Assembly (NCBI GenBank): GCA_964035545.1
Contig: CAXIUT010000311.1
Coordinates: forward strand, 1-23,220
Source: Bugula neritina
Lineage: Eukaryota; Animalia; Bryozoa
DNA: 23,220 nt
Direction of reading: 5' to 3'
Notes under the pieces: model-generated
Seen by the model: the letters and a program-made list of their open reading frames with translations, nothing else
What the model was told of the DNA's origin: nothing
Databases searched by the model: none
Position numbers and translations under genes: made by a program
Shown here: piece after piece, positions 215-23,220 of the stretch
How positions within the stretch are numbered: the stretch's first letter is position 1
How the letters are laid out: every line of letters starts with the position of its first letter

Positions 215-2209
215 ATGCAACAAAACAAAATGCCTGATGGTCAACGTACTAAGATCATCTACACACTCATCAAATAAGCCAAGTACCAAGACGTACATCT
301 TTTCTTCTTCAGGCCATCAACTATCTCAGCTATGAACTACAGTTCTGTCCTCGGAGTAGATCCATGTCCCTTCTGGCTTATTGCTACTACATGAGTCAAG
401 ATTTCCTCAACTCTGCTCGTGTATACTAACAGCTATCCAAATTTTATTCGGATGTTACTGAATATAAACTTTACTTGGCTCAGAGTCACTACAAAAATGG
501 AGATTTTGAGCAAGCATTGAAGGTATCTCAATCGATCAGCGACCCAGCTTTCCAGCAAAAGGTAATTCTTCTCCAGTCACTGATCAGATATGAACAAGAT
601 GAGATCCAACATGCCAAGTCTCTACTTCGACAAGGTAGTTGTATTTTAAGATAGCCAACCAGGAAGATTCAGATATTGTTGTCAATGGAGGATGCATTTT
701 ATACAAGGAAGGTAAGTACTAAGAAGCAAGAGTTAAGTTTGTTGATGCAATGAATTCCATTGGCTATGATTGTGAAATAGCCTATAACATTGCCTTATGC
801 CACTACAAACAAAAACAGTTGGCTCCCTCACTCAAATACATAGCCTAGATCATTGAAAAAGGAGTTAGAGAACATCCTTAGTTGGGAGTAGGATCATATG
901 CTCCTGATATAGAAGTCAAAAGTGTAGGCAATAGTCAAACTCTTAAGGAAACAGCTCTTATCTAGGCCTTCAATTTGAAAGCTGCAATAGAATATACTAT
1001 TCGCAATTATGCTGCAGCTAGATAGGCTTTACTGGATATGCCTCCTAGATCTGAAGAATAGTTGGACTCAGTATCACTATTAAACCAGGCTTTGATGAAC
1101 ATTGACGATGATCCTAATGGTTCATTTAAGAAGTTGAACTTTTTGTTGCAAAATCCTCCCTTCCTGCCTGAAACCTTCAGCAACCTGCTTTTGCTTTACT
1201 GTAAGTTTGGATATTACGACTTGGCTGCAGATGTTCTAGCTTAAAACTCTCAATTTACTTACAAGATGCCTAACCAATAAGATTTTTAGTTTATCGATGC
1301 TATTATTCTTCAAAAGGCATCTCCTGAATAATCACTAAGGAAGTTGGATTTGATAGCTAACAGATATATTGATTCTTTGAGACAGTTCACTAAAAGTATT
1401 CAAGATGCAAGATTGTCGAAAGATAATGAAGGTATTAAAAAGTCTTTAAAAGAATTTGATTAATGTCTCTAGAAGTATATTCCTGTTTTGATGTCTCAGG
1501 CTAAAATCTATTGGGATAAGTAGAATTATTCAGTAGTTGAGAAGCTATTCAGACAGAGTGCATAATTTTGTGCAGATCATGATACTTGGAAGTTAAACGT
1601 AGCTCATGTTTTTTTTGTTCTTTAGAGATACAACTAAGCTATAAGATATTATTAACCTATTGTTAACAAAAATGCAGATAACATGTTGAGTTTGACAGCT
1701 ATAGTGATAGCTAATCTTTGTGTTAGTTACATTATGGTCAATAAAAATGAAGAGGCAGAGGAAATTATGAAAAGATTGGAAGCAGAAGAAGAAAAAGCTG
1801 CATAAATCGCTTAAACTTAAAAACAGGCCAACCATTATCATCTATGTATCGTCAATTTGGTCATTGGAACTCTTTATTGTTCAAAAAATAACTACGACTT
1901 CGGCGTTGGCAGAATAATAAAATCTCTTTAGCCTATTCAAAAGAAAGTACTTTTTAATTAATGAAGCTTAATACTGATACTTGGTTCTATGCGAAGAGAT
2001 GCTCTTTATCATTATTGGAAATTCTATCAAAGCATATGATCGTGGTGAAGGACACTACTATTAGCGAGATAATTGACTTTTTGGACTTGGCTGATTAACA
2101 TGGCAAGACAACGCCTACTGTTTTCAACCCTCTGGAAGAACTTGATTAAAAACACACTGTTTCTTATTAGGCCCGAGAACTGAAAAGAATGTACATCAAA
2201 ATGAGATGA
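215..2209 (+). CDS. IFT70: Intraflagellar transport protein IFT70 / TTC30 / fleer (TPR protein), about 644 aa
   Basis: Exons 215-292, 313-634, 655-1946, 1967-2209 (three 20-nt introns). With TAA/TAG=E it reads MQQNKMPDGQRTKIIYTLIK...GCILYKEGKYEEA...IAEIIEKGVREHPELGVG...TALIEAFNLKAAIEY...DMPPRSEEELD...LLYCKFGYYDLAADVLAEN...WKLNVAHV...YHLCIVNLVIGTLYCSK...TDTWFYAKRC, matching TTC30 family motifs throughout. Ends in TGA. Confidence 0.97.
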
Positions 2210-2299
2210 TTCCCTTAAATATCATTATCAAGTCAATACTATCAGCTATTTAATGATTATCAATTGGTGCCTTAAAATTATCTATTGAATTCGCTGAGA

Positions 2300-2599
2300 T
2301 CATCTTACCAGTTTTTGGGGAGAGTTTTAAGCCAAGGTCTATCTCTTAGATATTTGCACTTTTTAGTATTGCGATAGTGAGCTCCTATTTGCTTTCCTTT
2401 GAACTATCCGCTGCAATAGGGACAGTTGTAAGATATCTATTCGAGTCTACTAGGGATATTGGTACATTGGGTCGAATTATTGGTGCATTGAACGTTATAT
2501 TCTTTGCATAAATGTTTTTCTTTGGTTGCTAATAAAAGAAATCATTGTCATTTATCTTTTTTGTTCTTGCGAAAGGAAGTTTTTTGGATTTGGTTGCAT
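2300..2599 (-). CDS. Small hypothetical protein, about 99 aa
   Basis: ATG 2599 to TGA 2300 is open under UAR=Glu (MQPNPKNFLSQEQKREMTMISF...). No recognisable domain. It could extend to TGA at 2260 if the GGGG at 2317-2320 is one base too long. Confidence 0.55.
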
Positions 2600-2676
2600 G
2601 ACTCCCTAGCTATAAAATACTATAATTATCATAAAAGGTAAATATTTCAAAAACAACAAAATAACTTAGATATAGG

Positions 2677-2791
2677 TTGAAGTTAAAGGAAGTAGTGAAG
2701 ATATTGAAGTTAAAGGAAGTAGTGAACATATTGAAGTTAAATGAGATAGTGAAGATATTGAAGTTAAAGGAAGTAGTGAAGATATTGAAGT
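2677..2791. repeat. 27-bp tandem repeat (TTGAAGTTAAAGGAAGTAGTGAAGATA), about 4.3 copies
   Basis: Units start at 2677, 2704, 2731, 2758, with a partial at 2785; units 2 and 3 carry substitutions. It lies immediately 3' of the stop codon of the 2795-3939 gene. Confidence 0.92.
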
Positions 2792-2794
2792 AGA

Positions 2795-3939
2795 TCATTT
2801 ATTTTTGGCTGTTTTGAGTTGTTCTAGGAGATTTTTATTTATTTTTTTAATTTAATTTAACTGCAGCTCTTTATCTGTAATCGTTTATGTTAATTTGTTG
2901 ACTAGTAGTTGCAATCCTGAATTATTTTATCCTTGTCCACTTTTATATCTAACTAGCATTTATAAGTTTTTTAATTTCATTTCCAACTACTTGATTCTCT
3001 ATTACGACTAGGTATCTTTTATGTTGCTATTTTTGTTGTTCTTAGGTGGTGGTAGTATTCCTTTTTAGTTTGCGAGTGATTATAATTTTTTTTTTAGTTT
3101 AGTGTTTTAATTTTATATGTTTTAGTATTTGAGGTTGAATTTTTATATTTATGATTCGTATTTTTAGCATTTTCTCTATGCTTGTTGTTTTAATAGTTTA
3201 GTCTATTGATATTAGTTTTGATATTTTTATATTTCTTTTTATAATTCTTCCTATTTTTTATTTTATATCAATTCTAATTTCTTTTGACAACTTCTATGTT
3301 CTTATTTCTATTATTTTAGCTCTTTCTTTATTATCATTATTTACTATATTATACTCTATTTACATTCTTGTAAAATCTGTTGTCTTATTTTAGTTGTCCT
3401 ACCTTCCTAACTGCAACCATCCCCTCTTCTCTTTCCTTCCTTATCATCTAGAGTTATCTCTTTGCGTTTATTAGATCTCCTTCTGCTTGGCATTTTCTTT
3501 CTCTTTCGATATTGTAGTTATGTTCTAACATTTAGTATTGTCTTTTGAGTGTTTTAAGTTCTTTATTTAGTTCATCTACCTTTAATACGAAAAGAGTATT
3601 ATTTTTCTTATCTTCTCCTTTGATTTTCTTCTTCTAATCTAGTTAAATAGTCGATTTCATGTTTATTTATAGCTATTCATTCGAAGATACTACTGGAGAT
3701 TACTTATTACTCTTATTCTCATCCTTTTTACTCTATTTTTTAACTACTTCGATTGACTAGTTATTTATTTATTCTTTATTGATTCTTTATTAATTTTGGA
3801 TGATGATATTTTTTGTTTAGTGATTTTGTTCAACTGATATTTAAGGATTTATACCTAGGTTGGAAGAATGGACAGAGCAGGTGCGAACAAGTAGAACAAA
3901 GAGATCTCTATTGAAGTTGTTATTTAGATTAAGTTTCAT
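2795..3939 (-). CDS. Coiled-coil hypothetical protein, about 374 aa
   Basis: ATG 3939, one 20-nt intron (3344-3363), TGA 2795. E/K/L-rich heptad-like sequence (...KVDELNKELKTLKRQYEMLE...KLTETITDKELQLNEIKKINKNLLEQLK). Confidence 0.8.
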
Positions 3940-4073
3940 AGATTATTTTTAATTATAGTTGAAGAGAAGAGAACTAAAAGTTTTTCTAATAAACTATATA
4001 TTAGGATATTATTGACTAATTTTCATTTACTATATTATTTTTTAACCTGATTTAAAAACTATACTATCTTGCT

Positions 4074-4618
4074 TCACTTGAATTAGAACTTATACCGGAA
4101 GCTACAACTCTTAAAACTTTTAATTTTGTGAATAAACGACTTATATTTTAGCTTACAATTATAAATATTTATCTTAGAGGAATTTATCTAGTTGCTTTTA
4201 TAATTAGTTATCGATTTATATTATCTAGGTTTATTCCATAAGAGTTATGCCATTGTATTTTTTACCCTCCACAAAAGGCTCAATCTGGACACAAATACTA
4301 TATACTCTCAATATTACATTGAACCGACATCATCTAAACAAGGCTGGTAGTATGAAGACTGTACTCCTTATATCTATTTGAAATCATGTGAATTTTTTAA
4401 ATACCATTTACATCTGATCTCATCTAAGGCCTATCCCGCTGAATCGTAAGATTAGTACTTTATTTTAGTTGAGTTTTGATATTTATTAAATCAGTATTGA
4501 TTCCTTTGCTTACCAGTCGACAAGTAAAAGAAGTCTAGTCAAAAAAATCAGAAGGCTTCGGCTACTAGCGACGAGTTTATTTTCTGAGAAAAAGGTCTGA
4601 TAATTTTTTATTAATCAT
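4074..4618 (-). CDS. Hypothetical protein, about 174 aa
   Basis: ATG 4618 (MINKKLSDLFLRKETRREEPKP...). A 20-nt GTA..AG intron at 4298-4317 removes the frame stop; TGA at 4074. No recognised domain. Confidence 0.6.
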
Positions 4619-12689: not shown

Positions 12690-14005
12690 ATGAAAATAAT
12701 CACTCTCAATCATAAAAAAATTAAAATATAAAATTAAGAAAAGAGGTACACCCTTAGATCTTAAAATCAAAAAGAAAAACAAATTGCTCTTTCCAATACT
12801 AAAATAAATAAATCAGTTAAAACTAAAAAAATAAAGAAAACTGTGAAGAAAAATCAACTCAAAAATAATAACAAAAAATCTATAAATGATAATAAGAAGA
12901 AAAACAATAAAAAGCAATCCAAAAAAGTAACAAAAAAAGTTAAAAAGTAATCAAAAAGTAAACAAAAGAGTCAAATAAAACTTGAAATTCTTCAAAAGCA
13001 AAAGAAAAAGTAAACTAAAACAAATTCTAGATCAAAAGGATTAAAAAAAGAATTTATTCCAAAGAATAATAAAGAATAAACTTCTAAGAGATAGTTAAAA
13101 AAAAATAGACCTTCTTCAAAGTTTCCAAAAAAATCAAAGACAAAGCCAAGATAACGTTCAAATTCTCAGACAATAAAAAAGATATCACAAAAAAAGAAAA
13201 AGTTACCTCCAAAGAAGACTTCAAATTAGGCTTATCAAAAATAATCTAGAAGGGTTTTATCTCCAGTAAAAATATAGAAGATAAGTAGAAAGCTAGATGT
13301 TTCTAAAATGAGAGCAAAGAAAGTGAAAGAGGAAGCATATATACTGAAGATATAATAATCTTAAATATAGAATATAAAGTTGAGATAATAGTAAAAAAGC
13401 AATAAATTTGATCAGAAGACTGTTCCTCAACAGAAGTTTAAATCTATTGCCTAATTGTAGCGGATAAAGAAATATGTTGATGAAAGGATATGTCTATACA
13501 ATGTTGAGAAGTTAGATAGTGGGGAGTGGAAGTTTAGAGTTTTTGCTGAAAAAGGTAAAATATATACAGTTAGATTACATAATAAAGTAGTTGTTTGCAG
13601 TTGTTTGGAATCAAGAATAAGTAGAAAGCCTTGCAGACATATTTACTTCATTCTGGGCAGAGTTGGCAAAAATGAAGCAGTTCTTCAGGAATACATCAAC
13701 GACAATGCCAATCTTGATGCATTTAGTCAAATAGATAAAGATCTAACAAAGAGACTAAGGTTGAGAATGAATGGAATTGAGACAGAAGATCCAATTAAAG
13801 ACAATGAATGTCAATTTTGTTTTAGTGAGTTAAAAGAGAAGATGAAGTTTTGAGTGAATGCAGGGAATGCAAGAAATATTTTCACAGTGATTGTATAAAG
13901 AGATGGAAGACATTCAGAAGCTACTGTCCGTGTTGTAGCAAACAAATGGATGTCAATGTTAAAATGTAGGAATCTGAGTTATAGTTATAGCTAGAGTAGA
14001 TCTGA
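12690..14005 (+). CDS. SWIM zinc finger + RING finger protein (ZSWIM2/MEKK1-type module) with a long Lys-rich N-terminus; -1 frame break inside the RING
   Basis: SWIM: FRVFAEKGKIYTVRLHNKVVVCSCLESRISRKPCRHIYFILGRV. The first half of the RING (CQFC) is in frame 0, which stops at 13851. The second half (CRECKKYFHSDCIKRWKTFRSYCPCC) is in the -1 frame, ending TGA 14003-14005. An in-frame ATG also exists at 12600. Confidence 0.82.
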
Positions 14006-14166
14006 TGGTTTATTCTTCTTTATTAAAATTATCTATTGATTTTGATAGTGTTTTTCGTTATCAAAGGCTATTATATTGTTAGTTATGCCTGTATTTTATT
14101 ATTTCTATATTCTACTATGTTCTTCTATTAGATTTAAGGAATAGAAGTAATTAATTATTCTATAAG

Positions 14167-17100
14167 ATGGGAAGCGAATGCTTGGCAACAACCCCTTTCT
14201 AAAAATACAGTATCTATCATCTTATTTAGATCGATTCTTCTAAGGTATCAACATCGCCTAACTGAAAGATCTTTGGCCAACAGTTAAAATTTACAAGATG
14301 AAATCTATATTTGAGGACAACTCTGAACCTAATCCTCAATATCCCAGTCACTCACATTTGCCTTATTAAAAATTCAAGAATGTTTTTCCTGAATTAGCCT
14401 CTTATCCTGAACAGCAGATCAAAATACTATTCGAGTTTTTCGATACTGATAGTAAAGGATTTGTAGATTGGGATTCTTTCTTATCAGCTTTGACAATATG
14501 TTACTATGGATCTGAAAAAGACTTGTCTGTTATAATGTTTCTGATGTTTGATCACTCTTTGGATTTCCAGTTAGATGATGCTTATCTCAAATTGATGGTA
14601 TAATGTAATGAAGCTCATCTAAAGGGAGATGACCTTGAATTACTTGATTACTAGGAAGTTATTGAACAACTAAGACAAGGTTAGTTTTTCACTATAGAAA
14701 GGTGGTTGAAAGAAGGATTAAAATACTTTGATTTTAGTAAGTTTAGAACAGTATTCAAGTTATTTCAGGAATAAAAAATGGAAAAAGAACTAATTAAAAA
14801 CTTCCATAGTTGGAATAGCGTATTTAATGAGTAGAAGGGAAAGTATATAGGTTATTTAGTGAATTTGAAATGGTTTTAAAGCTGGAGAATGTATGTTTTC
14901 CATCACTATAACATCAATATTGACATCTACTGCACAGATCTACAAACTATTAATACTGTCAAAACAACCAAAAGAGGTATGAAATCAACAAAGTCTCTTA
15001 AATAAACAAAAAAAGCTCTACTTGACTCGAATAAAGAACAACATGGATTTAGAGTTATGAAATTGCCTAGAGATACAACCAAGGAGTCCATTATCAAAGA
15101 TTTCGACTGTATTCATCGACATCTAGGAGAAAGACCAAGATAAATAACCAATTAGTTGCTTTAAGGAGAGTTCCAATAAGTATTAAGGAGTAATATGAGT
15201 GAGAATATGGATTATGTAATAATCTCAGAGAAAATATGGAAAAATTTGAAAAATATTTACGGAGGGTATCTCTAATTAAGAAGAACTGGATTTGACACTA
15301 TCTAGTTATATCCTAAATTGGCATGTATTTATTCTTCTTTTTTCAAGGGATGCCTTGACTATTCTTCTTAAACTTTGAGAGAAGTAAGTTCTTATATTCA
15401 AATTAGTCAAGTCTTGATGAGTTCATGTTAGATTACAGAAGAACAACTTAGTTCTAAGATAGTATATTTTAAGACTATTGGAATGAAAACTTGGTAAGAA
15501 GTAGAGGATATATCGATATTGTTTGCTGAGTTGACTTCATAGGTTTTGATCTTTTTGGTTTGTTTGTCTGAAGATCAAAAGGAAGCTTTCTAGAAAGCTC
15601 ATCAAAAGCCACCAAAATCAGTAACTGAAGTCAACCTTGGAGATTATTTGCTATTCGTGGATGCTAAGGGTCAATAACATACAGTAGTATTTATGGGTAA
15701 AAGTGTTGAAGGAAAGTATATTTTACACTTTAGTGGAGAATCTCATAGCAAGGATCTTTGTATGCTTGAAGTTTAATTTCGCAAGAAGTGTAAGTTAAGG
15801 CCTCGTATGTCTGAGATTGAGCCTGAGAAAAGAATTCACTGTGGAATGATGGGTTTGCCTAGTGGTCCTGGTTTGGGATTTATCAATACTATTCTAATAC
15901 AGTTATTTGGACATCGATAAATAAAGAAGTTGTTTCAGATGACAAAAGAATACAGAGATGATAAGTTGTTTTACTGTTTGACAAAGATCAATAATCTTTT
16001 GTTTAATCAGGAAAAGGTGGATAGTAGTGAGATAAAGATCATAGTTGAAGTATTTTTGAGTAGATTTAACAACTTTGACGTGACTATGTGTTTGGGGGTA
16101 TAAATATTTAAATTTAGGTTTTGAACGAGATGTTTACCCTGTTATCAACTGAATTTCAGGAGTAGAAATATCCAAATGTTCCTGGACAATATTTTGAGAT
16201 CTAGTTGTAGAAGAATATAAAGTGTTTTTAGTGTTCGAAGGTCAATTCTACGAGAGAAAGTTCATATGTGTATAAAGTGCTATTACCTTAACAATAATTT
16301 CAATATTTCAAGATAGTTTGGGTTCCTTTATACATGAACTCATAAAAAATAGTTTAAATTGTCCTTAAAATAGGTAAAGATGCTACTTTGGTACTTTACT
16401 ATCTATTTAGGAATAACTTATGAAAGCGATGGAAATGGAAATAGGCATAAATTAAAAACCATATATTTTGGCATAAGTTCAAGGCAGTGACATTATTAGA
16501 AATTTCAATTTTACTCTCAAAACAAGCAAATTAGAAAGTCTTAAAATCAGATAAGGAGACCAACTATTTGCCTTCTAACTAGTTAAAGACTTTAATTCTT
16601 TTGTGGGAAGTCATTTTAGCAATAGAGAGATGATTCACTAGGATTAGATCAAAAAAGATCAATTAATTGATTGCAAACACGATTAAAAAGGATGGATATT
16701 TGGAAAAGTTATCGAGTTAGAATTTTTACCTTACACTCAGGCTTCATTGGTAAGAGTCATGCATAAATTCAATAAAAATGAGAACTGGGAGATCACTTAC
16801 AACTGCTTCGAGGAGTATGTAGCGAGATTTCCTTTGAAAAGTCATCAAAATAGTTAACATTATCACTTGAAGGTGCAACAACGTTGTTTCAATGAGGTGT
16901 CTAACTCTATGCAGCTGATAGGTATTCCTTTAATTATGGGTTTGCCTGCTTGGATGAGATGGAAATAATTCTTTTTCTTTATTTATCTACAAATCAACCG
17001 TTTTATTACTGAACAATTTGGTTTTGATGTGTCAACTTTTTCTGAGCCGCCTATTAAAAAATCAACTACTAAAGGTAAAAGTACTTATTCTACTGTTGAT

Positions 17101-17811
17101 AAATTCAAAGAGTATAAGAGTAGTAGTCGTTTTCCTTATGATTTGAGATTTGTGGATAGTGAGAGTAGATGTGTGGTCTGTTTGAAATTTTTGAAGTCTT
17201 AAGTTTTCAAGGGAGAAAGATAAAGTTACTGTTAGGGTTGTTAGTTGTCTCAAAGTGAGCCTATTAGTTGGCAGGTCAAGCCTACTGATTTGATAGTTTG
17301 CATTGATTGGAGAGGAGCTGATAGATATAAAAGAGAATATATTAGCAATAGTGGAGCTGCTGATGCAAAGATATCTGAGCTGCATAAACAGGAAGAGTGT
17401 TCTCTTGGCACTTGTTTATCTAAGATGAAAACTGAATATATAGAAAAAGATGAGTTTTTATGCTGCAATATGCTAACTTAAAAGAAGATATCAGAAAAGA
17501 TACTGAAAACACCAAACAACTTGACCATCTATATTGAACGAATTCAACAAGAACTTGATGGGTTTAAGAAGATAGTGAATCGTCCAATGAAGATAGTGTT
17601 TGAGGGGTTAGTTATGCAAGATAAGAAGTACAATTTGATTGGTTTGACATCTGTGGAAGGAGAAAATCTTAACATCAGATATAAAACTTATACTATCAAG
17701 GGCAAAGGAGAGTGGTATGAATATGATGGACAACTCGTTCGGGTAGTCGATCAAAAACACCTTGAGAAGTAGTGCGCCTTGGTACTTTACTACTAAAAGA
17801 TATAAAAATGA
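14167..17811 (+). CDS. USP32-like protein (EF-hands + DUSP + split USP domain), catalytically degenerate, about 1194 aa
   Basis: Three 20-nt introns (14210-14229, 16098-16117, 16391-16410). EF-hand LFEFFDTDSKGFVDWDSFLSAL; DUSP YLVNLKWFESWRMYV...DYVIISEKIWKNLKNIYGG...IELYP; USP finger IKCFECSKVNSTRE; USP32-type FPYDLRFVD..CVVC..YCEGC..IDW; terminal YNLIG...WYEYD...ALVLYYE. Confidence 0.88.
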
Positions 17812-22603: not shown

Positions 22604-23220
22604 ATGTAAGGAGGTAAAATAAAAGTAAATAACCCTGTTGCTGAACTAGATGGAGATTAAATGACCAGGATCATCTGGAAGGCCATCAAAGATGAACTCA
22701 TCCTGCCTTTCCTTGATCTAGAAATTCTCTACTTCGATCTCGGAATGGAATATAGAGACAAAACAGATGATAAAGTTACTATTGAGGCTGCTGAGGCTAT
22801 CAAAAAATGTAAAGTAGGCATTAAGTGCGCTACAATTACTCCTGATGAGGCTCGTGTTGAAGAATTCAAGTTGAAGAAGATGTGGAAGAGTCCCAATGGA
22901 ACCATCAGAAACATTTTAAATGGAACTGTTTTCAGGGAGCCTATAATCATCAAGAACATTCCTAAGTTGGTTCCAGGTTGGAAAAAACCTATCATCATTG
23001 GAAGACATGCCTTTGGAGACCAGTATAAAGCCACTGATTTTGTTGTCGATAAGCCTGGAACTTTTTAAATGACATTCAAGGGAGATGATGGCTCAGAGGA
23101 AAAGATGGAAGTTTATAAGTTTACAGGTCATGGAGGAGTAGGTATGGGTATGTACAATACTGACGAAAGCATTGATTGCTTTGCTCATAGTTGTTTCAAA
23201 TACGCATTAGCTCGAAACTA
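22604..23220 (+). CDS. IDH: NADP-dependent isocitrate dehydrogenase, 5' part (runs off the window)
   Basis: [18 protein letters not shown][TAA=E]MTRIIWK...[41 protein letters not shown]...[16 protein letters not shown]...[10 protein letters not shown]. No N-terminal transit peptide is evident. Confidence 0.97.

Follow-up and report, generated by a model that had tools for sequence, protein, structure and literature searches.

The nuclear code of peritrichs is NCBI translation table 30; it was reportedly first described, for UAA, by Sanchez-Silva et al. in Vorticella and Opisthonecta. In Tetrahymena, Paramecium and Oxytricha, the two codons UAA and UAG (together UAR) encode Gln (table 6), while in the nuclear code of Blastocrithidia they encode Glu and UGA encodes Trp (table 31). 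A split reading, with UAA as Lys and UAG as Glu, is known from the ciliate Oligohymenophorea sp. PL0344 (PMC10553269). The reading of UAR as Glu is reported to have evolved once, in Peritrichia (PMC11687900, PMC10553269, PMC4967479), a group which published phylogenomics place as sister to Paramecium (PMC10553269).

The whole stretch of DNA analysed here, hereafter the window, is 23,220 nucleotides long. Judged from its sequence, it comes, with a probability of about 0.93, from a ciliate with a peritrich-type nuclear code, in which UAA and UAG encode Glu interchangeably with GAA and GAG, and UGA is the stop. Such a code is already known as the peritrich nuclear code, and is ordinary for an organism of this kind. 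The comparison with the peritrichs reveals no difference in the code: UAA and UAG are Glu, UGA is stop, and the host is an oligohymenophorean, sister to Paramecium in our tree; it is the membership of this host in Peritrichia that we infer. With the Gln code of other ciliates the window shares UAA and UAG as sense codons, UGA as the only stop, and the C4A2 telomeres known from Tetrahymena and Paramecium, but it reads UAR as Glu and has only CAA and CAG at its Gln positions. The code of PL0344 is similar in its Glu at UAG, its UGA stop and the ciliate class of its host, and differs in UAA, which in the window is Glu. Blastocrithidia likewise reads both UAA and UAG as Glu; the window, in contrast, has no UGA in frame and has TGG for Trp, and its host is a ciliate and not a trypanosomatid.

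Materials and methods

Two conserved genes, IFT70 (TTC30) and NADP isocitrate dehydrogenase (IDH), and one fast-evolving neighbour of IFT70 served to test the code. Searches used stop-free pieces of the translation, and an X was put at each TAA or TAG only for the read-through alignment. A first set of homologs held 31 distant IFT70 homologs plus two other ciliates. Because a word search with fish TTC30A gave teleosts only, a profile made of ciliate pieces was then used for diversity, and it yielded 120 full-length sequences of IFT70, covering animals, fungi, algae, excavates and ciliates. The final scoring of alignment columns, as mean BLOSUM62 fit, covered 122 full-length IFT70 homologs.

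Codon pairs were pooled over five relatives (L001, L003, L091, L093 and L096) with 85-90% amino-acid identity to the window. Contigs from sequencing runs X1, X3, X4 and X5, which belong to three studies, were compared over positions 150-2400. The maximum-likelihood tree of IFT70 was built under LG+C20+F+G4 from 38 rows, among them no peritrich, with TAA and TAG as gaps; support is given as ultrafast bootstrap/SH-aLRT.

Results

The window begins at a chromosome end. Its first 105 positions, read directly, are 17.5 repeats of CCCCAA (C4A2), a ciliate macronuclear telomere. The G+C content is about 31%, and a Rfam scan of the whole window returned zero matches. The features on which the analysis of the code relies are the following:

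1-105, no strand: telomere, CCCCAA (C4A2) repeats, read directly
215-292, plus strand: IFT70/TTC30 exon 1, with ATG at 215 and TAA codon 21 at 275-277, from the three-frame translation
293-312, plus strand: IFT70 intron 1, 20 nt, GT..AG; the frame demands its removal, and L001 has it at the same place and length
313-634, plus strand: IFT70 exon 2, with TAA codon 65 at 427-429, from the gene model
635-654, plus strand: IFT70 intron 2, 20 nt, GT..AG; kept in L001, its exact 20 letters absent from an X4 contig
655-1946, plus strand: IFT70 exon 3, with 11 TAA and 10 TAG in frame, from alignment columns and codon pairs with relatives
1947-1966, plus strand: IFT70 intron 3, 20 nt, GT..AG; kept in L001, absent from an X4 contig
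1967-2209, plus strand: IFT70 exon 4, with the stop TGA at 2207-2209; TGA at the same codon in L001 and L096
2260-4611, minus strand: fast-evolving gene or genes, rich in TAA/TAG, C-terminus ending in TGA; found by tblastx, syntenic with L001:8583-10811
22604-23220, plus strand: NADP isocitrate dehydrogenase, 5' part, truncated where the window ends; matched in the PDB at E = 5.6e-69

In the three-frame translation of 215-2230, the IFT70 protein lies across all three frames. Excision of the three 20-nt GT..AG stretches joins it into a coding sequence of 1935 nt (644 codons and the TGA stop), which contains 15 TAA, 11 TAG and no TGA in frame; the two off frames hold 19 and 26 TGA. The resulting protein is as long as IFT70 of Tetrahymena, Paramecium and Pseudocohnilembus (644), and is 50% identical to fish TTC30A/IFT70A over 654 residues and 54% identical to IFT70 of Palpitomonas. 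Structure-based look-ups were less specific. For a 68-residue piece of IFT70, the PDB gave weak matches only, with Chlamydomonas IFT70 (E = 9e-4) ranking below designed TPR proteins, and the ESM Atlas returned generic TPR clusters only.

All three introns are exactly 20 nt long, and L001, a relative 79% identical in nucleotides, keeps their position and length but not their sequence. Narrowly distributed intron lengths have also been described for peritrichs (PMC13685798). As 20 leaves a remainder of 2 when divided by 3, overlooked introns of this size mimic frameshifts or yield false in-frame TGA codons. A paper cited in PMC12411067 is quoted there for 'more prevalent programmed ribosomal frameshifting' in peritrichs; speculatively, such reports might in part be an effect of overlooked 20-nt introns.

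Distant homologs point to Glu at the in-frame TAA and TAG codons of IFT70. In the first homolog set, E outnumbered every other residue at 10 of 14 TAA and 10 of 11 TAG sites. Across the 122 full-length homologs, the columns at TAG codons 209, 237, 257, 269, 406, 559 and 632 are 95-100% E, those at TAA codons 330, 359 and 437 are 97-100% E, and those at TAA codons 65 and 467 are 86-89% E. The sites named in the preliminary description as conserved Glu positions are all present in the reading frame, both for TAG (x; IA-x-II at codon 198, HP-x-LGVG at 209, LI-x-AFNLK at 237, SEE-x-LD at 269 and KSL-x-P at 559) and for TAA (z; VY-z-QL at 65, VLA-z-N at 330, SA-z-FC at 437 and YY-z-PI at 467). Overall, E was the commonest residue at 20 of the 25 scored TAA/TAG sites, compared with 7% of all columns (binomial p = 3e-19). 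Five sites (codons 457, 517, 520, 608 and 625) lie in variable columns and are uninformative.

Scored separately, each codon fits Glu best. The mean BLOSUM62 fit for TAA is 2.91 for E, 1.72 for D, 1.06 for Q and 0.14 for K, and for TAG it is 4.15, 2.07, 1.61 and 0.68, respectively. The same procedure recovers the expected residue at control codons, with GAA/GAG read as E, CAA/CAG as Q, AAR as K, GAY as D, TAY as Y and TGG as W, in agreement with the earlier observation that conserved Gln is written CAA or CAG and conserved Trp TGG.

Close relatives show the same from the exchange of codons. The 68-residue piece at 430-633 matches many metagenomic fragments at 77-94% identity, and the 24 related metagenomic proteins that extend over TAA codon 65 all have E there. 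Furthermore, several related metagenomic open reading frames end exactly at GAG or GAA positions of the window. The ortholog L001:2550-4559, from a marine metagenome scaffold, aligns without gaps at 79% nucleotide identity, and has its three introns at the same positions and with the same lengths. Opposite the 26 TAA/TAG codons of the window, it has GAA/GAG 19 times, GAC once and TAA/TAG six times, with zero CAR, AAR or UAY partners. This pairing holds for both codons, as 12 of the 15 TAA and 7 of the 11 TAG stand opposite GAR, and the other four TAG opposite TAA. Two extra TAA codons of L001 are GAA in the window. The CAR, AAR and TGG codons all pair with their own kind.

When the five relatives are pooled, the UAR codons of the window pair with GAR 58 times, with UAR 34 times, with GAY six times, with CAA/CAG once and with others twice. 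In the reverse direction, UAR codons of the relatives stand opposite GAR 26 times and opposite CAR never. The 133 CAR codons of the window pair with CAR in the relatives, and the partners of TAA/TAG and of CAA/CAG differ with a Fisher p of 3e-47. Introns and reading frame are kept in all five relatives.

Two more distant ciliates behave differently. L010 has seven UAR codons in IFT70, of which three, the largest single class, pair with Gln of the window, and the four UAR codons of L004 stand opposite Gln (one), TAA/TAG (one) and others (two). Few as they are, these pairings with Gln indicate that the method is able to separate the two codes. L004 is part of a set of loci (L004-L009) from a different ciliate of marine biofilm metagenomes, with 48% G+C and an IFT70 59% identical to that of the window; positions 1-24 of L007 are C4A4 telomere repeats.

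The clade of the window is widespread. At least 27 protein clusters with 77-94% identity were found in ENA, JGI and Logan assemblies, and the sources (L001-L003, L091-L107; P0289-P0315) include contigs of up to 74 kb and a marine time-series metagenome. Owing to the code, gene calling had broken all of these proteins into short fragments. The surroundings of IFT70 vary within the clade. In the window the gene starts 110 bp from the telomere and adjoins a minus-strand gene. In L001, IFT70 and the neighbour gene are about 4 kb apart, with UCH-domain genes in between, and IFT70 is preceded by 2.5 kb of other coding sequence. Close relatives therefore differ in their chromosome ends and in the order of their genes.

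The codons also vary between strains. Contigs from X1, X3, X4 and X5 hold IFT70 at about 99% identity. Among the 14 differences in the coding sequence, 11 are synonymous in the standard code, two are TAA to GAA (275 and 1653) and one is TAG to TAA (1025); X1, for example, has G at 275 and thus GAA at codon 21. All 14 are silent only if TAA and TAG both mean Glu. Two X4 contigs are missing introns 2 and 3 to the letter, 20 nt each, and otherwise match, and this exact loss of two introns suggests that they are spliced cDNA. Of the 20 TAA/TAG codons that they cover, 19 begin with T, and the sole exception, G at 1653, is shared with X1 and X3 contigs that contain the introns. If they are indeed cDNA, the introns are confirmed, and the TAA and TAG kept in them argue against RNA editing.

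The two other genes of the test agree with IFT70. In the neighbour gene (about 2260-4611), UAR codons of the window stand opposite GAR 30 times in L001, opposite UAR 11 times, GAY three times, CAR twice and AAR twice. Pairings of UAR with CAR amount to 2 of 68, and true Glu codons show an equally low rate of pairing with Q. The IDH fragment has in-frame TAA at 22607, 22658 and 23066. As claimed earlier, the TAA at 22658-22660 lies in DGD-TAA-MTRIIW, a position at which 80 of 80 bacterial NADP-IDH loci have E. The TAA at 23066 is at a variable site (T/S/K/E) and uninformative. The TAA at 22607 is the second codon, directly after the ATG (22604-22609), which indicates that the reassigned codon is not avoided near the start.

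Conservation in the remaining genes of the window was too poor for evidence on codons. Searched against Pfam, the remaining stop-free pieces gave SWIM, UCH and EF-hand domains only. A USP-type gene at 14046-17811 (plus strand) has EF-hand and UCH domains, and its Cys-box region, GLPSGPGLGFINT, is without the catalytic Cys, so that the gene looks like a pseudo-deubiquitinase. At 13461-13850 (plus strand) lies the C-terminal part of a lysine-rich protein with a SWIM zinc finger (Pfam E = 4.6e-5).

UGA is the stop in the genes where this could be read. TGA follows directly after codon 644 of IFT70 in the window, in L001 (as TGA TGA) and in L096, and it is absent in frame from the IFT70 orthologs (about 2,600 codons) and from the IDH fragment. 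In the neighbour gene, TGA stands eight codons past the last similar residue in both the window and L001, and in the window two TAA lie inside these final eight codons. The earlier statement that all gene models end in TGA thus holds for IFT70 and the neighbour gene, the two genes for which it is a meaningful test. In the USP-like gene, a TGA at 16122-16124 seems to interrupt the frame; the break vanishes on removal of a candidate 20-nt GT..AG intron (16098-16117).

Scans of the window and 17 related loci found no tRNA, and no eRF1 gene was present in the window or in the scanned related loci. By analogy with known cases of reassigned stops (PMC10553269), the decoders of UAA and UAG would be tRNAs derived from tRNA-Glu, with the anticodons UUA and CUA, and eRF1 would have lost the recognition of UAA and UAG while keeping that of UGA. 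In the peritrich Carchesium, the N-domain of eRF1 reportedly has its Thr missing from the GTS motif (PMC10089648).

In the IFT70 tree, the window groups with its five relatives in a single clade (100/100), on a stem of 0.32. This clade is nested within the group of Tetrahymena, Pseudocohnilembus and Paramecium (100/97), as sister to Paramecium (93/89), and the next branch out is the colpodean Platyophrya (100/100).

Discussion

The single-gene tree places the organism in Oligohymenophorea, and its C4A2 telomeres fit this class. Taken together, the code and this tree, built without peritrich rows, suggest that the organism is most probably a peritrich. The preliminary description had left the choice between a peritrich and an independent reassignment; here the tree adds a position next to Paramecium, the one published for peritrichs, and so favours the first.

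An independent reassignment of UAR to Glu in a non-peritrich lineage of the Oligohymenophorea is unlikely, though of the alternatives it survives best. The clade of the window sits on a long stem in a tree without any peritrich row, and Oligohymenophorea are known to hold several code variants, including that of sp. PL0344 (PMC10553269). Against this stand the reported single origin of UAR=Glu in Peritrichia and the agreement of the tree position with the published one (PMC10553269), together with telomeres that fit the class and the presence of the clade in marine and other metagenomes, as expected of a large group like the peritrichs. There is a small chance that this widespread clade might be a separate lineage with its own UAR=Glu, or might combine UAR=Glu with a context-dependent decoding of UGA in other genes.

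A related and still less probable reading is an ambiguous code, in which UAR is Glu and UGA would be Trp inside genes while still serving as stop. The absence of in-frame TGA from IFT70 of the window and from the orthologs, and conserved Trp codons that are all TGG, speak against it. These two observations also separate the window from the Blastocrithidia code, as previously proposed. The single apparent TGA break, in the USP-like gene, is removed by a candidate splice of 20 nt, and introns of this size could fake in-frame TGA elsewhere.

That the window uses the Gln code of other ciliates or the split code, with its Glu-like columns a product of chance, has a negligible probability: the few UAR-CAR pairings that would speak for it (1 of 101 in the IFT70 relatives, 2 of 68 in the neighbour gene) are matched by the equally low Q-pairing of true Glu codons and opposed by the Fisher test, by E scoring far above Q and K for each codon separately, and by invariant-E columns that include both TAA and TAG. 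For the genes tested, both codes are refuted by the codon pairs of the relatives and the columns of 122 homologs. The description made from the sequence had rejected them too, and the numbers bear it out, with Q at 1.06 (TAA) and 1.61 (TAG) against 2.91 and 4.15 for E and one CAR against 58 GAR partners in the case of the Gln code, and K at 0.14 against 2.91 for E at TAA and zero AAR partners in IFT70 in the case of the split code. It is just as improbable that the TAA and TAG codons are not translated as such, whether due to a pseudogene, assembly errors or editing of the mRNA to GAA/GAG, since the same codons occur in contigs of runs from three studies, 14 of 14 strain differences are silent, introns and frame are kept in five relatives, and in the X4 contigs without introns 19 of 20 TAA/TAG codons still start with T. 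No evidence in favour of this reading was found.

Glu at UAA and UAG is also supported by evidence independent of deep homology: the exchange of codons between relatives, the silent TAA/GAA polymorphism among strains, and intron-less contigs that keep TAA and TAG. The code has practical consequences. Under the standard or bacterial code, gene calling chops every gene of this genome and of related metagenomic contigs into fragments, and the relatives were indeed retrieved as pieces of 40-150 residues. Translation with Gln (table 6) would make roughly 4% of the residues wrong. Should the organism not be a peritrich, UAR=Glu would have arisen twice in ciliates.
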